Shown here in pieces: positions 3,774 through 12,171 of a DNA stretch of 64,000 bases. The notes beneath the pieces are model-generated. The model saw nothing but the letters and a program-made list of their open reading frames with translations. It did not search any database and was not told where the DNA came from. The number at the start of each line of letters is the position of its first letter. Within the stretch, counting starts at the first letter, position 1. The position numbers and the translations under genes were made by a program. The stretch covers positions 1-64,000 of the forward strand of contig NW_013657654.1 in the NCBI RefSeq assembly GCF_000142905.1. The letters run 5' to 3'. The stretch comes from Thecamonas trahens ATCC 50062. Its lineage: Eukaryota > Protista > Apusomonadida.

Positions 3774-6122
3774 GTGGTAATGGCGGCTGCCAAGCTGGAG
3801 ACGTCCTCCGCTATGGTGGACGTGCTCACGCGTGCGGTCACCGACGCGGCCGACCTCGTTTCTGGGCTCAGCGGCCAAGTGACGCAGCTGCGTGGCGAAG
3901 TGACGCAGCTGCGTGGCGAAGTGACGCAGCTGCGTGGCGAAGTGACGCAGCTGCGTGGCATTGTCATGCACAAGAGGGGCATCGTGATTTCTGGGCTCAG
4001 CGGCCAAGTGACGCAGCTGCGTGGCGAAGTGACGCAGCTGCGTGGCCGAGCTGCGTGTGGCCAAGAATGAGCTGTTTGCGGCGGAAGAGAAGCTGAAGGA
4101 GGCCTGAAGGAGGCGGAAGAGAAGGCTGAGGAGAAGCTGCCGCAGGCCGAGGAGAAGCTGCTTGCGGCCAAAGCCGAGCTGGTCGCAGCCAAAGCCGAGC
4201 TGGTCGCAGCCAAAGCCGAGCTGAGGGAAGCCGAGGAGAAGCTGCAGGCGGCAAAGTGGGAGAGTGTCCGGGAGAAAGCCCGCCCTTTGGACGTCATTTC
4301 CGCGCCGTCGAATGCCTCGGCGAAGACTGTGGAGGAGCACGTGCACCTGGAGGCTCTCTCGCCGGTGGGCGATCCGGCTTTCCTTGTTGCGCTTGCGGAC
4401 GGTGGGCTGCTGGCCGAGAACGAGGTGGGCGACATTGCTGCGCTCCGCACCGCGGTTTGGGACGGATCTGCGGGCGCTGGACTGCAGACAGCGCTTGCGT
4501 CGGCGCTCAAGGCGCGGCTGGGCGCGCTCTACTTTGCAGAGCGCGGACCCGGGGTCGCCGCCCTTCAACTCCGGAACTCTGAGGTCGCGTTCACCGGGCT
4601 GCTGGGCTCGGCGGTTGCGAGCGTGCTCGCGAGGGGCTTTCCGTGGGCCGTAGCGGTCACGGAAGCGGCCACGTGCGGTGTGCGCAACTCACGGGGCTCG
4701 CCAGCCAACCTCGTGGTCTACGGGCGGGCCGATGGGGAAGAGGGCCGTGCCACCACGGTCGAGCGCGAGAAGCTCCGTCCGAGCCTCGTGGTGGAGCTCG
4801 GGTCGTCGGCCAAGAACGTCCAGGCAGCGGCATACGCGCACAACCTTGCGATTTGCTACGGCGACGTGGAGCATCAGGTGCCGATGGCGACGCTGGAGGG
4901 GCCGCATCCGACGGCGTCGGACTTTACGTGGGCACGCTCACCCTCCGGGCGTTGTTGTCCGTCGGTTGCCGAGCGGGCAAGCGACGCGAGGACACGGACG
5001 ACGGTGCCGTTTGGGACGTGGGAGTATTCAGACCTCGACACGTTTTGCGAGGTGTTTGCTACGGCTTTTGTCGCCGGCCTCAGCGTGGTGGCTGCGACGG
5101 CGGACCTGTTGCTGACTGGGCGCAGGCCGCCTGTGGTGCTTGCGGGCGCCAACACGTGCATGGTGGCCTCGCGACGGGTGTACAAGTGGTTCCGGCCCTC
5201 GACAGCCTCGTCGCGCCGGATCAACTTGCCCATGTGGACAGCTCACTCGCCGGCGGCCGAGGCGCGCGTGCTCACTGAGAGCGGCGGCAGCGACGCTCCG
5301 CGCGTGCTTGTCACCACGTTTCTCGCCCACGAGTCGCACTCGTACGTCCGGGTCGGCCACTTTGTCTCGCTCATCGGCTGGCTCGAGGCCATGCGCCGCG
5401 ACTCGCTCGTCCACGGTGACATCCTGTTCCGCAACATCCGCTTCCCGGCTCCGATCGAGAGGCCCGTGTGCGACGTCATCGCCAGTGCTCTCGCGGCTCT
5501 CGACGACGGGGCGTACTTTGCCGCGGCCGTTGCGACGGCTCAGGCGGGCAAGGCCGCGGCGGACGCGCTGGCCGAGGTCCTGCGCCTGCTCGCCAACCCC
5601 TGCCTCGAAGCTGTCGCGGCGAGCAAGTCACTGCTGTACGCGGCACTGGCTGACGATGCAGACGGCGTCGTGGTGCCCGTGTGGCAGGCGGTGGTCATCG
5701 ACTACGATCTGGCGCGCTCGACGGACGAGGAGCCCCGGTACCCGCCAGGCTTTGTTGTGGACAAGAAGGAGTTGCCAGACGGGGCGCGGCACAAGGGCGC
5801 CAAGGGCAACCTGCCCATGGCGCCCGTCCATGACGTGTTTGCTGTCAAGGCTCTCCTCGAGCAGACTGTACCGAAGGACAGCGGCCTGCTGGCGGGTGCC
5901 TTGCACGGAGCCGTTGCCTTGGACGCGGTGCCCGAGACGCACTACTGCCGCGAGATGTGGAAGGCGACACGGGGGATCGGGCGGTTCGACGGTGACGGGT
6001 CGCAGTGGTGCACCGCTGCGCTCTCTGCGCTCGTGGGCATCCCGCTCGACACGAGGCTTGAGGTACAGCTCGATCCTAGCCCCAAGGCGTCGTCGTCGCC
6101 ACCCACCACTCCGCCAAAGTGA
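3774..6122 (+). CDS. Crinkler/CR-effector-like protein: heptad coiled coil + PD-(D/E)xK REase-like region + atypical protein kinase; 5' part disrupted
   Basis: Kinase-like motifs VYKW, HGDILFRN (catalytic loop), VVIDYDLAR (DFG equivalent) and HDVFAV. REase-like motifs PANLVVYG, SLVVELG and QAAAY. 3774-4070 and 4071-6122 are in the same frame, separated by one TGA at 4068-4070. Coiled-coil repeats EVTQLRG and AKAELVA. Confidence 0.6.
3877..4046 (+). repeat. 21-bp coding tandem repeat (aagtgacgcagctgcgtggcg), 4 + 2 copies
   Basis: Directly visible; encodes EVTQLRG heptads. A second 21-bp unit (gccaaagccgagctggtcgca) lies at ~4167-4223. Confidence 0.9.
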
Positions 6123-6258
6123 GTGTCCAGCACCACCCTCATCGGCGAGAATGTGCGTAAGCGAGTCGAAGACTCGACGTATCCTTGCGCACCCGACGTA
6201 CCATGATGGACATTTCGAGGGGAAGTACTTGCTTCCGCCACGCAGCGGCCCTCCACGC

Positions 6259-9200
6259 CTACAACCTACCGCGGAGCAGAGCCGCCGCAACGGCACGCCG
6301 CAGCCCGGGAATGTCGCTCGGACCCACAACGATTTCAGCATCGGCGGCAACAAAAGCGGCAAACGCCAGCGCAAAGACCCCGCTGTCCGACAGGTTGGTC
6401 TGCTGCGGAAGGCCGACAGGTTTGACGACATGCCACTGCGACATGTCCAGCCTCCTGCCCGTCTCCTGCTCCACCTGCAGCGCCACATACTCCTTCAGCG
6501 CCTCTGCTAGCCCGCTGTCCACCTCGCCCGCCATCGAGTCGTAGAACGTGATCGTTTTGGGTCCAAGCTCAATAGCCACCGTGAACCAGTGGCTATTGTC
6601 CAAGTTGACCGGGACGATGATCTTGGCCAACGACATGATGCCGCCGTCGACGGCATTGCCGAGCCACTTGGACACCCTGCCATAGTTGAGCGTCCGCCTG
6701 TCGAGGTACAGAGCAGCGGCGAGGAACGAGTTGGTGAACCAGACCTTGTGCCGCGTGAACCTGTTGAAGTGAGCCTGCAGCAGCTCCATATACGCGTTGA
6801 CGATCCTGTCACTGAGCCACCCGCCAGGCTCGAGGCGGACAAAGTGAGCCCTGGTGAGGGTTATGTTGCCGACATCGGCCACGCCCCGCGCGGTACACGC
6901 TCGCATGACATGGTCCACCCTCTCCTCCTCGAAGGGGGATAGCGGGGGCTTGATGCAAGCGAGCCAGCCTCTGCGTGTCATGCGCTCGTCGGTACCGAGG
7001 AGCTTGGCGGCCTTGGACTTGGGCCCTGACTTGGCGGCAACCTCGCGCTTGCGCTTGCGCTTGGCCTCGCGCTTGAGGTGCTCGAACATGGGGACAACGT
7101 TGGGCTGGGCAGCGATCTCAGCCAGACTTGACTTGCCGCAGCCACCAAGACCGTTAAAATCTCCGGCCACCTTGCTCGCTCCCTTCAACAACTCACGGAC
7201 GACGGCAGCACGATTCGAGGGTAGTGGCACGTATGCAAGTTGGACTGGCTCGGGGGGGAGCTCGGGGGTCTTAGCCTCGGCCTCAGAGAGCTTCGCTCCC
7301 TCGGACTTGGGCTCGGGCTCGGTGTCGAGTAGCTTGACCTCACGCCTGAGCCGGCGATAGGCCTCAGGCCTGCGCTTGCACTTTCGCTTAAGCTCATGTC
7401 TCACGGCCTTGACGACCTCGAGCTTGAGCTCTCGCCTGAAAGGCTTAAAGGCCTTTGCCTTGGGCTCTGCGTCGGGGGGTTTGGTAGCCTCAAGCTTGGG
7501 TGGGGGCTCACCGTTGGCAAACTTTGCGACCTCAGGCTTGATCCCGACCTCGGCATCAATCGTCGAGAGCACCTTCAGCGAGCGAGTCGCCAGGTCTTCC
7601 AGCAACGCCTCGACAGAGTTCTGGTGCGCGTCATACGGTTCCAAGCCATGGTCAAGAAGCGCATAGGCTGTGGCCACGCGATCGACCTTGTCGGTTGGAG
7701 TGAGATGTCTGTGGCGCCAGGTCTGGAACTGGTGCTCTTGGTCTGGCCCTTGGAAGTAGCTGTACATGAGCTTGATGATGGGGTGGAGAGCAGACGCGGC
7801 AGACTCCGCTGCTTTTTGCATATCAGGCCTGGATGGATCATCTTGGAGCGCAGCATGGTCAGCCTCGGCAGCAGCAAGGAGGTCGTTGAGGTTCGCTAAC
7901 TTGTGGGGTGCAGGGAACGCTTTGAACGTAGCAAGCGAAAGGCTGCCATGGTTGAGGAACACTGGGAACACCTTGCAGTGGTTCGCCCGACAAAGTGCGG
8001 TCTTGGCCTCAGCCACAGCCCAGCGTGTGGCGAGAAAGTACGCCGAGACAATGATGAGGACGACACGCGAGGCCTTGACAATGTCAGCGCAGTCATCTGG
8101 GTATTCACACTGTATGCCGTCGAGTGAGCTGGTGTCCACAAAGACGCTGAGGGACTGGTCGACCCTCAGGATGCGATCACGGAGCGCAACCGCATAGCCC
8201 TTGTCGTAACTACCATGACATATGAAGACGTCATAGGTCTTGGTGGGTAAAGCGGATGACGATGGCGGCATGGAATCGCCATTAGAGTTGGGCGAGAACT
8301 CGCTTGGAGATGGCGGGAGAGGCATTGCAAGCGACGAAGTGGCGGCGACAATTGGCTTAGCAGCCTCTGGCTCGGGTTTTGACTCGGCGACGGCTTCACG
8401 CTCGCGCTTGGCCTCGCGCTTGGCCTTGCCTCCAGACTTGGCCATACTCTTCTTACGGAGATAGATATTCATGCTACGGGCGACGGTGACCTTGACCGCG
8501 TCCTTGTAGCCCATGCTGGCCAGGGTGTCGCTCGAGGCGCCGGGTTGGAAGCCCCGGCGGTGCCACACCATTGACCGCTTTCCAGACCCGAAAACTACAT
8601 CAAAGTACTTGCGGAGGCCATCAACGGCAGACTTGTGGCTCGACGGGCTCTTGCTGCCGCCAAACACCTGCTTCCACGCCGGCGTCCCCGCTGCCGACGC
8701 GCCCCACTTGCGCAGACCCTTGACCGAGAACGGCATGCCGTAGCTCTCCACCGTCTCACCCGGCGGAATGAGGTCAGGCCGCCACGCCACGTACTTGCTC
8801 GCCACACCACCGCCGTGCGCAGTGCCCTTGTTGAGCTCGGCGAGCAAGCCCTTCAGCCGCGCCTTCTCCTTCGGCTTGGGCCCGCGCTTCTTCCCCCCTT
8901 CTTCTCCTTCTCGCGCCGTCGCACGACGACCCTCTTCACACCAGGTGCAAGAGGCAGGGTAGGATCGACAAGCTCTGCCCACGTTGGTGTCTCGACGCCG
9001 GTAGCATCAGCCACCACGGCGACAATCCGAGTCGAAGCAAGGTTGATGGCCACGTCGGAGCGACCGAGGGTGAGATAGCTGGCGTTGTCCGCCTGCAGCA
9101 CCCACCCCGCTGCATACGCCCAGAAGCAAGCCGTACAGAGCAGGAGAGTTCGACGAGGCTTGCAGGGCGGCGTCACAGGCGTGTGGAGTGCGGCGGCCAC

Positions 9201-9371
9201 GACGCTGTTGCCTATCTCGGCGAGGGCAACCCCGCACGACGGACAGCTGGCGAACGGCGAGCCCGAAACCACCGGGGCGGCTATCCCCGGCCCGGCTTTG
9301 GGCGGGCGGAGGTCGGGGTAGAGGCGTGTCATGTGCTGCTGCCATATGGGGGGGAGTTCTGGTGTGGTGCC

Positions 9372-9374
<3 letters not shown>
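6259..9374 (-). CDS. CxxC..CxxC Zn-finger / TIR / remnant P-loop / Ulp1-SENP (C48) pseudo-protease multidomain protein (~1040 aa after repairing one frameshift near 8893-8898)
   Basis: TIR: YDVFICHG..VFVD..IVKASRVVLIIVSAYFLATRWAVAE (~7900-8240). Walker A-like GLGGCGKS (~7125-7152). C48 motifs WLSDRIVNAY, FTNSF, IVPVNLDNSHW, YDSM and QQTNLSDSGVF (~6270-6850). The upstream ORF from ATG 9374 (CPSC...CTAC) joins by adding one G to a G6 run. Confidence 0.8.

Positions 9375-9453
<79 letters not shown>
9375..9453. repeat. (GT)n(GA)n microsatellite abutting the minus-strand ATG
   Basis: Directly visible. Confidence 0.95.
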
Positions 9454-9454
<1 letters not shown>

Positions 9455-10129
9455 TGGGGACTGCCAGAGGGTGGTGCACTTTTTAACGTGCGGCGCTTAC
9501 TGGAGGCGGCTTGAGGCAAGGGTGAGTACCTCCATGGTGGGCTTCTCCGACAGCAACAACGCCGACAACGCGCACCAGGCAACGACGCAGGTGCTGGACC
9601 TCGTCCGTGCTTCGCCTGACTCGCACTTTGGACGTGGCATGCTTCGTCCTGGCCTGCTCGCGCAGATCAACGTGGCGCTCGGCTATCGGGCGCCGTCCAC
9701 GAGACGTCGTTGAGCGAGAACGCCTGCGCCGGGTACTCGGCCATCGGGCACAGAGGTTACGGTATGGCACGGGGCCAAATCGGGCCTACCTGAAGAGCAT
9801 TAGCACCAATATCGCTCTATTGATAGTCACGTCCATCACAGCTTCAGGCTATCCCAGCGGCACCGTCCTCGCCACCTCCTTCCGCCCCCTCCGATCGCCC
9901 ATAGCAGCCACCATCGGCCCCTGCACAACGTCATACAACGCAATCCCAGCCGCGGCTCATTTGACTCTACCCATTGCGAAGCTGTGTGCCCTCACACCCA
10001 GCCGTCTGTCTGTCTCCGCCCAATCGGTTTCTTCGTTTTCCTCCGTGTCGCACACTTCTCCCGCCACCCCACCCACCCACCCACCCACCCACCCCAGCCA
10101 CACACACACACACACCTCGACAGCACACC

Positions 10130-12171
10130 ATGAACTCGAGTACCTTCTCCCTCGCCACAAGCACCCTTGCCGGCTCCGTCGCCGCCCATCGACGGGCGCA
10201 GGCAACGACGACTCGACATGGTCCTGGAACAACTTTGGCGAGTCGGGCTTCGAGTCCGGCTTTGTTGATGCCGGTGCCGACGACGACTCGGCTTCTGCTC
10301 AGCTCGCACCGCCCAAGAATGACGGTGTCCTTGTTCTCATCGATTGCTCGCCATCGATGATGGTGCCAGTCGAGAACACCCGGCCGAAGACCGAAGACGA
10401 CGACAGCGACGACGGCGATGACGACGACCTCAACGAGCCCGAGTCCGGCTACCGCCTTGCGCTCCGCGTCGCCAAGTACGTCATCCGCGACAAGATGATC
10501 TCTTCACCATCGAGCGTCATTGGCGTGTGTCTCTACGGCACTGCCGAGACCCGCAACTCGGCTGGATACTCTGGCATCTACATGCTCATCGACATGGACT
10601 TTCCGGACGTCTCCATGATCGAAAAGCTGGAGGACGAGTTGGCCAAGGACCCTTCAGAGCCGTTTGCCTACGGCCACTGGGAGCCTCCCGCAGGAACCAA
10701 CAATCAGTTCCCGTTCGAGACAGCGCTGTGCGCTTGCAACGAGCGCTACCAAAAGGTGACTCGGACCCGCCTCGGCGGCAAGCGTATCTGGCTCTTCACC
10801 AACAACGACAACCCAAACCCGACAGACCTTGCCCTCCGCCGCATGGCCCAGACTCGCGCCGAAGACCTGCTCCAGCTCAACATCGCCATCGAGCTCTTCG
10901 CCGTCGAGCCGCCACCGGTCCTCGCCCGCACCCCGTTTGACGTTCACAAGTTCTTCCTCAAGATCATCGCCGTCGACGAAGACTCTGACACCGGCGTTCC
11001 CGACTTCTCTGCCATGTCGCAGTTTTCCGAGATGCGCTCCTACTGCCGCCGCCGCATGCACCACAAGCGCGCCGCTGCCATTGTGCCATGGACCCTGTTT
11101 GACGGCGTCCAGGTCGGCGTCGAGATCTTCAACAACATCCAGCGTGAGAAGAAGACTCCTCATGTATGGCTCGATGCAGAGACCAACGAGCCGGTTCAGT
11201 CGCACCGCTCGTGGATCTGTGCCACCACCGGCGCCGAGCTCCAGCAGTCCCGCATCGCCACGGAGTACCGCTTCGGCGACCGCATGGTGCCCATCGCCCG
11301 CGACGAGATCAAGGCCATCAAAGCCTCCTTTGGCGAGCCCTCACTCACACTCATGGGATTTAAGCCGCGGTCCGCGCTCGCAAAGCACCACAACCTCCGC
11401 ACCGCGCAGTTTGTCTATCCCCACGAGAAGAACATCTCCGGCTCAACCCGCGCATTTGCCGCTCTCCACGACCGCATGATTGCCAAAGACAAGATCGCCA
11501 TCTGCCGCCTCATCACCCAGGCCGGCGGCGAGCCCCGCTTTGTTGCCCTCCTCCCGCAGCCCGAGGTTCGCAATCCCGAGACCCGCGTCATGATTCAAGG
11601 CCCGGGCATGCATCTCGTCACCCTGCCGTACGCCGACGACATCCGTGACCTCGCCATCTCAGGTCGTGACCTGCCGCCGCCCACAGCCCAGCAAGTCAAC
11701 GCCGCAAAGGCCGTCGTCACCAGCATCGACCTCGAGGAGTTTGACACCGACGCCTTTGCCGACCCTGCCATCCAGCGCCACCTCACTGCGCTCGAGTCCA
11801 TGGCCCTCCAGCGCGACGACGTTGGCGAGGTCGAGGACGCCGTCATGCCCGACGAGGAGGCCATGGCCGACTTTGCCGAAGAGATCAATGGCTTTGCTGC
11901 CGCGGTCTACCCTCCGGACTACGTCCCGCCCACAAAGGCTGTTCCCAGCCGTAAGCGCAAGGCCACTTCCTCAGCCGCCGGCCCCGCCGCAAAGCGCTCC
12001 AAGCCCGCGCAGCCGCTCGACTGGCTCACGCTCGCCAACCAGGGCAAGCTGGGCAAGGCCACCGTCGCCACCCTCCGCGACTACCTCAACTCCGAGGGGA
12101 TCGCCATTCCGGCACGCGCCAAGAAGGCGGACCTCATTTCCCTGGTCAAGGTTCATCTCGGCGTCGCTTGA
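10130..12171 (+). CDS. XRCC6: Ku70 (vWA, Ku core, C-terminal SAP domain); probable intron 10140-10201
   Basis: Motifs LIDCSPSM, IGVCLYGT, KRIWLFTNNDNP, LMGFKP, GSTRAFAAL, PRFVAL, LPYADDIR, DPAIQRH and a SAP-like TVATLRDYL..KKADLI. A GT..CAG intron joins ATG 10130 in frame. Confidence 0.93.

Follow-up and report, generated by a model that had tools for sequence, protein, structure and literature searches.

A TIR-C48 chimera in Thecamonas trahens with serine at the SUMO protease nucleophile position: candidate natural SUMO trap or decaying gene

In plants, truncated receptors of the TIR-X type and nucleotide-binding leucine-rich repeat receptors with integrated domains (NLR-IDs) are already established, and the domains catalogued as integrated into NLRs include Peptidase_C48, recorded for three plant families (Fragaria, Glycine, Zea) (PMC4759884). 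The SUMO proteases Ulp1 and SENP1 (MEROPS C48) have been converted into SUMO traps by exchange of the catalytic cysteine: the engineered forms Ulp1 C580S and SENP1 C603S (PDB 2g4d, UTAG) are inactive and trap SUMO and SUMO conjugates at nanomolar affinity (PMC5774762). Here we describe a gene of the protist Thecamonas trahens ATCC 50062 that resembles both. It lies at 6259-8982 on the minus strand of the first 64,000 nucleotides of contig NW_013657654.1 (the window), and its 907-codon open reading frame (ORF), referred to here as the main ORF, joins an NLR-family TIR head to a homologue of the C48 proteases that carries a serine at the nucleophile position. No paper linking T. trahens to NLR or TIR genes was found in the literature.

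The likeness to plant TIR-X or TIR-N proteins and NLR-IDs lies in the fusion of an NLR-family TIR head with a non-canonical domain that has a host enzyme as its paralogue; here, the C48 domain is paralogous to the host's own C48 genes. In contrast to the plant receptors, the gene belongs to a protist, only a P-loop stub is left of the NB-ARC, a leucine-rich repeat (LRR) or WD40 sensor is missing, and the nucleophile change is natural; moreover, the TIR-C48 combination arose independently, from the genome's own TIR-NB-ARC-WD40 family. The domain shares with Ulp1 and SENP1 the fold, the invariant residues and the position of the Cys-to-Ser change. Unlike in the engineered traps, this change occurs naturally in a genome; the identity of the domain to outside relatives is a mere 33-37%, and it is fused to a TIR. 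The unusual features here are the natural nucleophile change and the protist setting.

With a probability of about 0.4, we consider that the gene encodes a chimeric TIR-X protein in which the nucleotide-binding oligomerisation domain (NOD) switch and the WD40 sensor have been replaced by a natural SUMO trap that clusters NAD+-consuming TIRs. The serine-bearing domain would bind SUMO or SUMO conjugates without cleaving them, like the engineered Ulp1 and SENP1 forms, because those forms trap SUMO and the residues of the SUMO-tail tunnel are kept; alternatively, it might serve as bait for factors that target SUMO proteases. Multivalent ligands could then gather several copies, upon which the plant-type, Glu-bearing TIRs would self-associate and consume or convert NAD+. 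With the NOD switch lost, the TIR would be activated only by such clustering or by partner TIRs. An Rdx-like N-terminal ORF would now be uncoupled by a one-base frame change, so that an internal ATG, at residue 83 or later, would be needed for translating the TIR-C48 part. The wider claim, that a NOD-less immune or cell-death effector, fired by ligand clustering, carries on a plant-type NADase TIR the first natural Cys-to-Ser SENP pseudoenzyme, and that integrated-domain logic was reached independently in an apusomonad-grade protist, appears doubtful to us. The parts of the locus are as follows.

8856-9374, minus strand: upstream ORF in frame A, 173 codons, with CPSC at 9234-9245, CTAC at 9126-9137 and an Rdx-like part at residues of about 67-150
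8893-8898, minus strand: run of six G (G6); a seventh G would join frames A and B, giving ...EKEKKGG followed by KKRGPKPK...
8356-8982, minus strand: private N-terminal region of the main ORF, residues 1-209, with a cassette rich in K, E, P and A at its end (8353-8442)
7903-8235, minus strand: TIR domain by Pfam TIR_2 and fold model, residues 250-360, with Glu325 at 8008-8010
7555-7902, minus strand: helical post-TIR region, residues 361-476, common to the family and aligning with paralogues, predicted to be all-helical
7267-7554, minus strand: K/E/P-rich insertion of about 95 residues (477-572), found in no paralogue
7081-7266, minus strand: NB-ARC stub, residues 573-634, comprising a pre-P-loop segment, a degenerate beta-1, Walker A and about 16 residues more
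6928-7080, minus strand: K/R-rich linker, residues 635-685, with the third cassette copy at 7000-7070
6262-6927, minus strand: Ulp1/SENP-type C48 domain, residues 686-907, with Ser867 (AGC, 6382-6384) at the nucleophile position

The C48 domain was recognized by Pfam Peptidase_C48 (PF02902) at residues 722-899 (E 3.2e-22) and aligned with SENP1 over 218 residues (E 4e-18). Its closest solved relatives are the SUMO-specific SENP1/2/5/3 and Ulp1, not a NEDD8 protease. Trp722, Asp725, His798, Trp799, Asp815 and Gln859/860 (oxyanion Gln) are kept, as are both Trp residues of the SUMO-tail tunnel when aligned with SENP1, and Ser867 occupies the position of SENP1 Cys603, as it does in the engineered C603S entry 2g4d. 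An earlier note on this DNA had read the domain as a full C48 fold with His, Asp and the Gln pair kept and Cys replaced by Ser, which the SENP1 alignment bears out, and its statement that Cys-to-Ser SENP mutants trap substrate agrees with what is described for Ulp1 C580S and SENP1 C603S (PMC5774762). The mechanism put forward in that note, binding of conjugates or baiting of an effector followed by TIR oligomerisation, resembles the putative one given above. Judged by its residues, the domain is a homologue of the Ulp1/SENP family and no cysteine peptidase.

To place the substitution among C48 proteins, relatives were collected by an exhaustive HMMER search, which found 5257. Of the best 150, at least 145 have the nucleophile Cys, and Ser is confined to the gene's own cluster. 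Eleven columns are invariant in the 52 longest relatives; the TIR-C48 protein keeps ten of them and loses the Cys alone. Within the genome (28.7 Mb in 131 contigs), six C48 loci were found, and the other complete genes (on C20, C58 and C1) keep both His and Cys in three of three cases. Since the best relatives and the other C48 genes of the genome keep Cys, Ser867 is derived and rare. A sister fragment (C73:12245-12565; L021:4250-4561) is a 116-codon remnant, 72% identical in protein and 79% in DNA, in which the Cys is kept, the His region is lost and stops occur upstream. An origin of the C48 domain from a transposon family was considered and rejected, as the genome has only six C48 loci.

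The serine codon is real. AGC was read at 6382-6384 in a 2010 DNA run of the organism, in an estuary metagenome contig, in a seawater metatranscriptome contig covering 6194-6442 and in an ENA metagenome protein that is 99% identical, so that the TGC considered in the earlier note was not seen. The evidence from runs consists of assembled contigs, and the runs in which the locus occurs are of marine or estuarine origin.

Pfam TIR_2 matched residues 252-345 (E 4.6e-7; 30.8 bits with a cut-off of 28 bits). Glu325, in the motif RWAVAE, falls on the Glu of WCxxEL, the plant TIR motif, when aligned with 3jrn and is invariant across an alignment of 13 family TIRs, in line with the TIR and catalytic-type Glu claimed previously. 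An AlphaFold (AF2) model of residues 240-478 built on 13 paralogues reached a mean predicted local distance difference test score (pLDDT) of 82.6, and its best fold matches were the plant NLR TIRs RPP1, RUN1, RPS4 and SNC1 (E about 2e-6 to 1e-5), with L6 and Roq1 also found. Nearly all of the top 30 fold matches are plant NLR-type TIRs, while animal and bacterial TIRs rank far lower, so that the likeness to plant TIR-type NLRs (TNLs) extends to both the fold and the kept catalytic Glu. Profile, modelled fold and Glu325 together point to a NADase-type TIR, for which NAD+ cleavage is predicted. A PADLOC search gave a match confined to the TIR region.

The Walker A motif GLGGCGKS (7129-7152, residues 611-618) stands alone, as had been claimed. 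In an alignment with seven paralogues, NB-ARC homology ends at about residue 634, roughly 16 residues past Walker A, after ...PNVVPMFEH, and none of Walker B, RNBS, GLPL or the winged-helix part was found in the main ORF. Pfam gave no NB-ARC match in the main ORF, although the paralogues yield one, and detected no WD40, ANK or LRR repeats.

The origin of the head can be traced within the genome. More than 20 paralogues of the TIR-to-P-loop block were found, mostly no more than a few kb from a contig end. Those of full length have the architecture TIR-NB-ARC-WD40 and a size of 1271-1733 residues; in addition, there is one ANK-TIR-NB-ARC protein. The main ORF is homologous to this family (for example C70:68813-71965, C59, C97) over residues ~208-476 and 573-634. 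It lacks the rest of the NB-ARC, the WD40 and the ANK parts of these proteins and has gained the K/E/P insert, a private N-terminus and the C48 domain. The closest paralogue is the ANK-TIR-NB-ARC gene at C70:68813-71965, with 83% nucleotide identity over 7565-8355; at the protein level, the TIR and post-TIR block is 72-75% identical and the start of the NB-ARC 53%. In the TIR-C48 protein, the insert of about 95 residues lies between the post-TIR helices and this NB-ARC start. Further genes carry the TIR head too: an ANK-kinase-TIR gene, one that has an AAA_22-type P-loop domain, and several short ORFs. Shuffling of the head is therefore common in this genome. Among these genes, C1:67991-70267 (L040:2991-5267) is a 759-residue ORF with ankyrin repeats, a protein kinase and a C-terminal family TIR. 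Another family member, on C39 (L041:3329-4852), has 508 residues, and its NB-ARC match spans profile positions 5-63 only, which makes it a second copy ending near the P-loop.

Given the sharp homology boundaries, the 83% identity to the C70 paralogue, the more than 20 copies and the varied architectures of the TIR head, it is well supported by sequence comparison that the gene is a lineage-specific chimera near a contig end whose TIR-to-P-loop block comes from the genome's own NLR-like family. As the alignments show, this block comprises the pre-TIR segment, the TIR, the helical post-TIR region and the first ~60 NB-ARC residues, joined to a private N-terminus and a divergent C48 domain. All three junctions are low-complexity K/E/P-rich cassettes that are related to each other. 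An enrichment of SUMOylation consensus sites in these linkers was looked for and rejected (3 psi-K-x-E motifs versus 1.9 expected, p 0.3). The private N-terminal region (residues 1-209) has no paralogue in the genome and no match in Pfam, NCBIfam or the PDB. The earlier note knew of no described protein of this architecture; this holds insofar as none of the 52 longest C48 relatives carries a TIR, but C48 domains integrated in plant NLRs are on record (PMC4759884). Paralogues, a search for which it had suggested, exist for both the TIR (more than 20 copies) and the C48 part (six loci), but the serine is kept only in the gene's own cluster.

The selective history of the gene was also considered. 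dN/dS (the ratio of nonsynonymous to synonymous substitution rates) is 0.41 against the C73 C48 fragment (dS 0.54) and 0.59 against the C70 TIR block (dS 0.34), and no stop interrupts the 907 codons even at an identity of only 79-83% to the closest paralogous DNA. These values and the open frame speak for constraint during most of the gene's history. A second copy of part of the locus (C119:1-2656; L002), which is probably a haplotig, matches 6370-7516 at 99.3% and 6002-6259 exactly, with N runs between.

Several observations weigh against a working SUMO-sensing TIR protein. Comparison of the assembly, the C119 copy, the metagenome contig and the runs shows about ten recent single-base variants. 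All of them are nonsynonymous, with the exception of one extra, silent third-position change in a codon that is altered already. Derived residues number 35 in the TIR-C48 lineage and 13 in the C70 paralogue, an approximately 2.7-fold faster protein evolution. The catalytic loop of the C119 copy reads NSG instead of DSG, so that the invariant Asp before the nucleophile is lost. Together, these three observations make recent evolution look relaxed or diversifying. Furthermore, the protein is without an oligomerising NOD domain, the beta-1 strand ahead of the P-loop is degenerate, the N-terminal ORF is out of frame, and the RNA evidence consists of two short metatranscriptome contigs that possibly derive from DNA. 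Finally, neither homologue nor metagenome searches found an orthologue or a second protein of TIR-C48 architecture; word-indexed homologue searches with the whole ORF, the C48 region and the upstream ORF returned one near-identical metagenome protein or nothing.

Because the recent variants are nonsynonymous and the lineage has evolved faster, a decaying chimera is a serious rival and a real possibility. The gene would then be a by-product of subtelomere-type shuffling whose function was never selected or was recently lost, and it would have suffered successive lesions in the G-run frame change, the loss of the nucleophile and the reduction of the NB-ARC to a stub. G6 was read in two DNA data sets, and the regions near contig ends hold many short or broken family copies (pieces of 65 and 259 aa and a 215-aa frame interrupted by TGA), the NB-ARC match of the C39 member also stopping at profile position 63, while the sister C48 copy on C73 has been reduced to its 116-codon remnant. 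The 3-base indels that separate the data sets sit in triplet repeats; they need no selection to be explained and are therefore weak evidence for it. Long neutral decay, however, would have produced many stops and frameshifts at 79-83% paralogue DNA identity, and a dN/dS of 0.4-0.6 is not that of a gene drifting at 1. All invariant C48 residues except the Cys survive, and the sequence is present in RNA libraries. The gene may be either a SUMO-sensing cell-death trigger or a decaying chimera.

The frame break itself admits another explanation. The upstream ORF lies in frame A between an ATG at 9374 and a stop at 8853, and it overlaps frame B, that of the main ORF, around the G run. GC content at third codon positions (GC3) is ~0.8 in frame A from 9375 to ~9060 and high in frame B from ~8930 onward, which indicates that both parts are, or recently were, coding-like. 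A miscalled run that is really G7, or a short intron, would make the two a single intact protein of ~1038 residues comprising the Rdx-like domain, TIR, NB stub and C48. One extra G gives a smooth basic stretch, and near 8930-9040 the high GC3 passes from frame A to frame B. Homopolymers are often miscounted in 454 and long-read sequencing, and the methods used for the runs are not on record. We nevertheless regard such an intact protein as unlikely, since G6 is found both in the assembly and in a DNA contig of the 2010 run (8678-9343, 0 differences). In-frame 3-base insertions at 7118 and 8651, the latter ~240 nt away from the run, and several substitutions set this sample apart from the assembly as another allele or strain, which thus also has G6. 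Concerning an intron, the organism does have GT-AG introns, and the genome is not intron-free, as the SUMO gene on C12 (L035:1480-2099) carries one of ~300 nt (GTACGG...CAG) between a 35-codon exon 1 and a 69-codon exon 2, the exons having been read separately and unjoined. However, among the hundreds of GT..AG combinations enumerated between the frames none was a convincing intron, and the candidates past the Rdx-like domain span just ~35-100 nt with no convincing signals. Metagenome scans, with the N-terminal region as query or with an exact pattern allowing G6 to G8 at the run, gave no match. The earlier view that one polypeptide holds the CxxC motifs together with the TIR and C48 domains thus does not agree with the frames as read in the assembly and in the 2010 contig.

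The CxxC/CxxC finger proposed previously is out of frame with the main ORF, has no profile support and is probably not a finger. Against the PDB, the upstream ORF gave seven weak matches, four of them to SelW/Rdx-fold proteins (2oka, 2ojl, 2fa8, 2obk), with 2oka best at E 0.004. The second CxxC, CTAC at 9126-9137, aligns with the redox CxxC of these bacterial proteins, and the match of ~100 residues, which shares the beta1-CxxC-helix pattern (C-T-x-C-x-W ... A-x-W ... Q), ends just before the G run. Weak as they are, these matches favour a thioredoxin-fold domain over a zinc finger. In contrast to genuine SelW-like proteins, the upstream ORF has no Pfam or NCBIfam match, the Pfam Rdx profile included. 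A single-sequence AF2 model was unusable (pLDDT 38), and no second copy was found in the genome. A perfect (TG)32 microsatellite at 9374-9437 abuts the ATG, and the frame stays open through it as His-Thr repeats, which makes the actual start site uncertain. Two Rdx-family matches with in-frame TGA at other places in the genome (C61:25978-26118 and C1:166113-166313) are likely to be true selenoprotein genes of the SelW/SelT type.

Rather than being clustered by its own C48 domain, the protein might act as an adaptor or modulator in the manner of the truncated plant TN/TX proteins: its TIR would pair with full-length family members, above all of the C70 type, and the dead C48 domain would localise it to SUMO-rich sites or dampen signalling. 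The high identity of its TIR and post-TIR block to the C70 paralogue, the coexistence of many TIR architectures in the genome and the missing oligomerising domain all fit such a role. On the other hand, nothing points to co-regulation or linkage with the C70 gene, the pairing surfaces are only putative, and the functional doubts raised above apply equally, so that we consider this role improbable. A working serine-type SUMO protease using Ser867 as nucleophile is scarcely credible, as the Ser-His-Asp set is formally present but the same substitution inactivates Ulp1 and SENP1 (PMC5774762) and Ser is found in no other relative among the best 150.

If the SUMO-trapping TIR protein is functional, the integrated-domain shuffling of NLR heads known from plants would also occur in a unicellular relative of animals and fungi, and no nucleotide-binding switch would be needed to couple a TIR effector to a sensor. 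Nature would then have made the same SUMO-trapping Cys-to-Ser protease that laboratories engineer, and the gene would provide a direct way to study how SUMO is connected with TIR/NAD+ signalling. If it is decaying, it still gives a clear snapshot of how receptor families at contig ends make and lose chimeric genes.

The neighbourhood of the locus was inspected as well. A Ku70-type gene at 9607-12171 on the plus strand is transcribed divergently from the TIR-C48 gene and is open in one frame throughout, encoding Ku_N, Ku core and Ku_C together with an HeH/SAP-like motif at the C-terminus. On the other side, at 3873-4245 and 4287-6122 on the plus strand, two arrays of 21-bp repeats precede a 611-codon ORF that is convergent on the TIR-C48 gene and had no match in Pfam, the PDB or PADLOC. 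At 6100-6146 (47 bases), contigs of three runs match with increased depth, and beyond this stretch all continue into one and the same unrelated sequence. This points to a short dispersed repeat where the neighbouring ORF has its 3' end.

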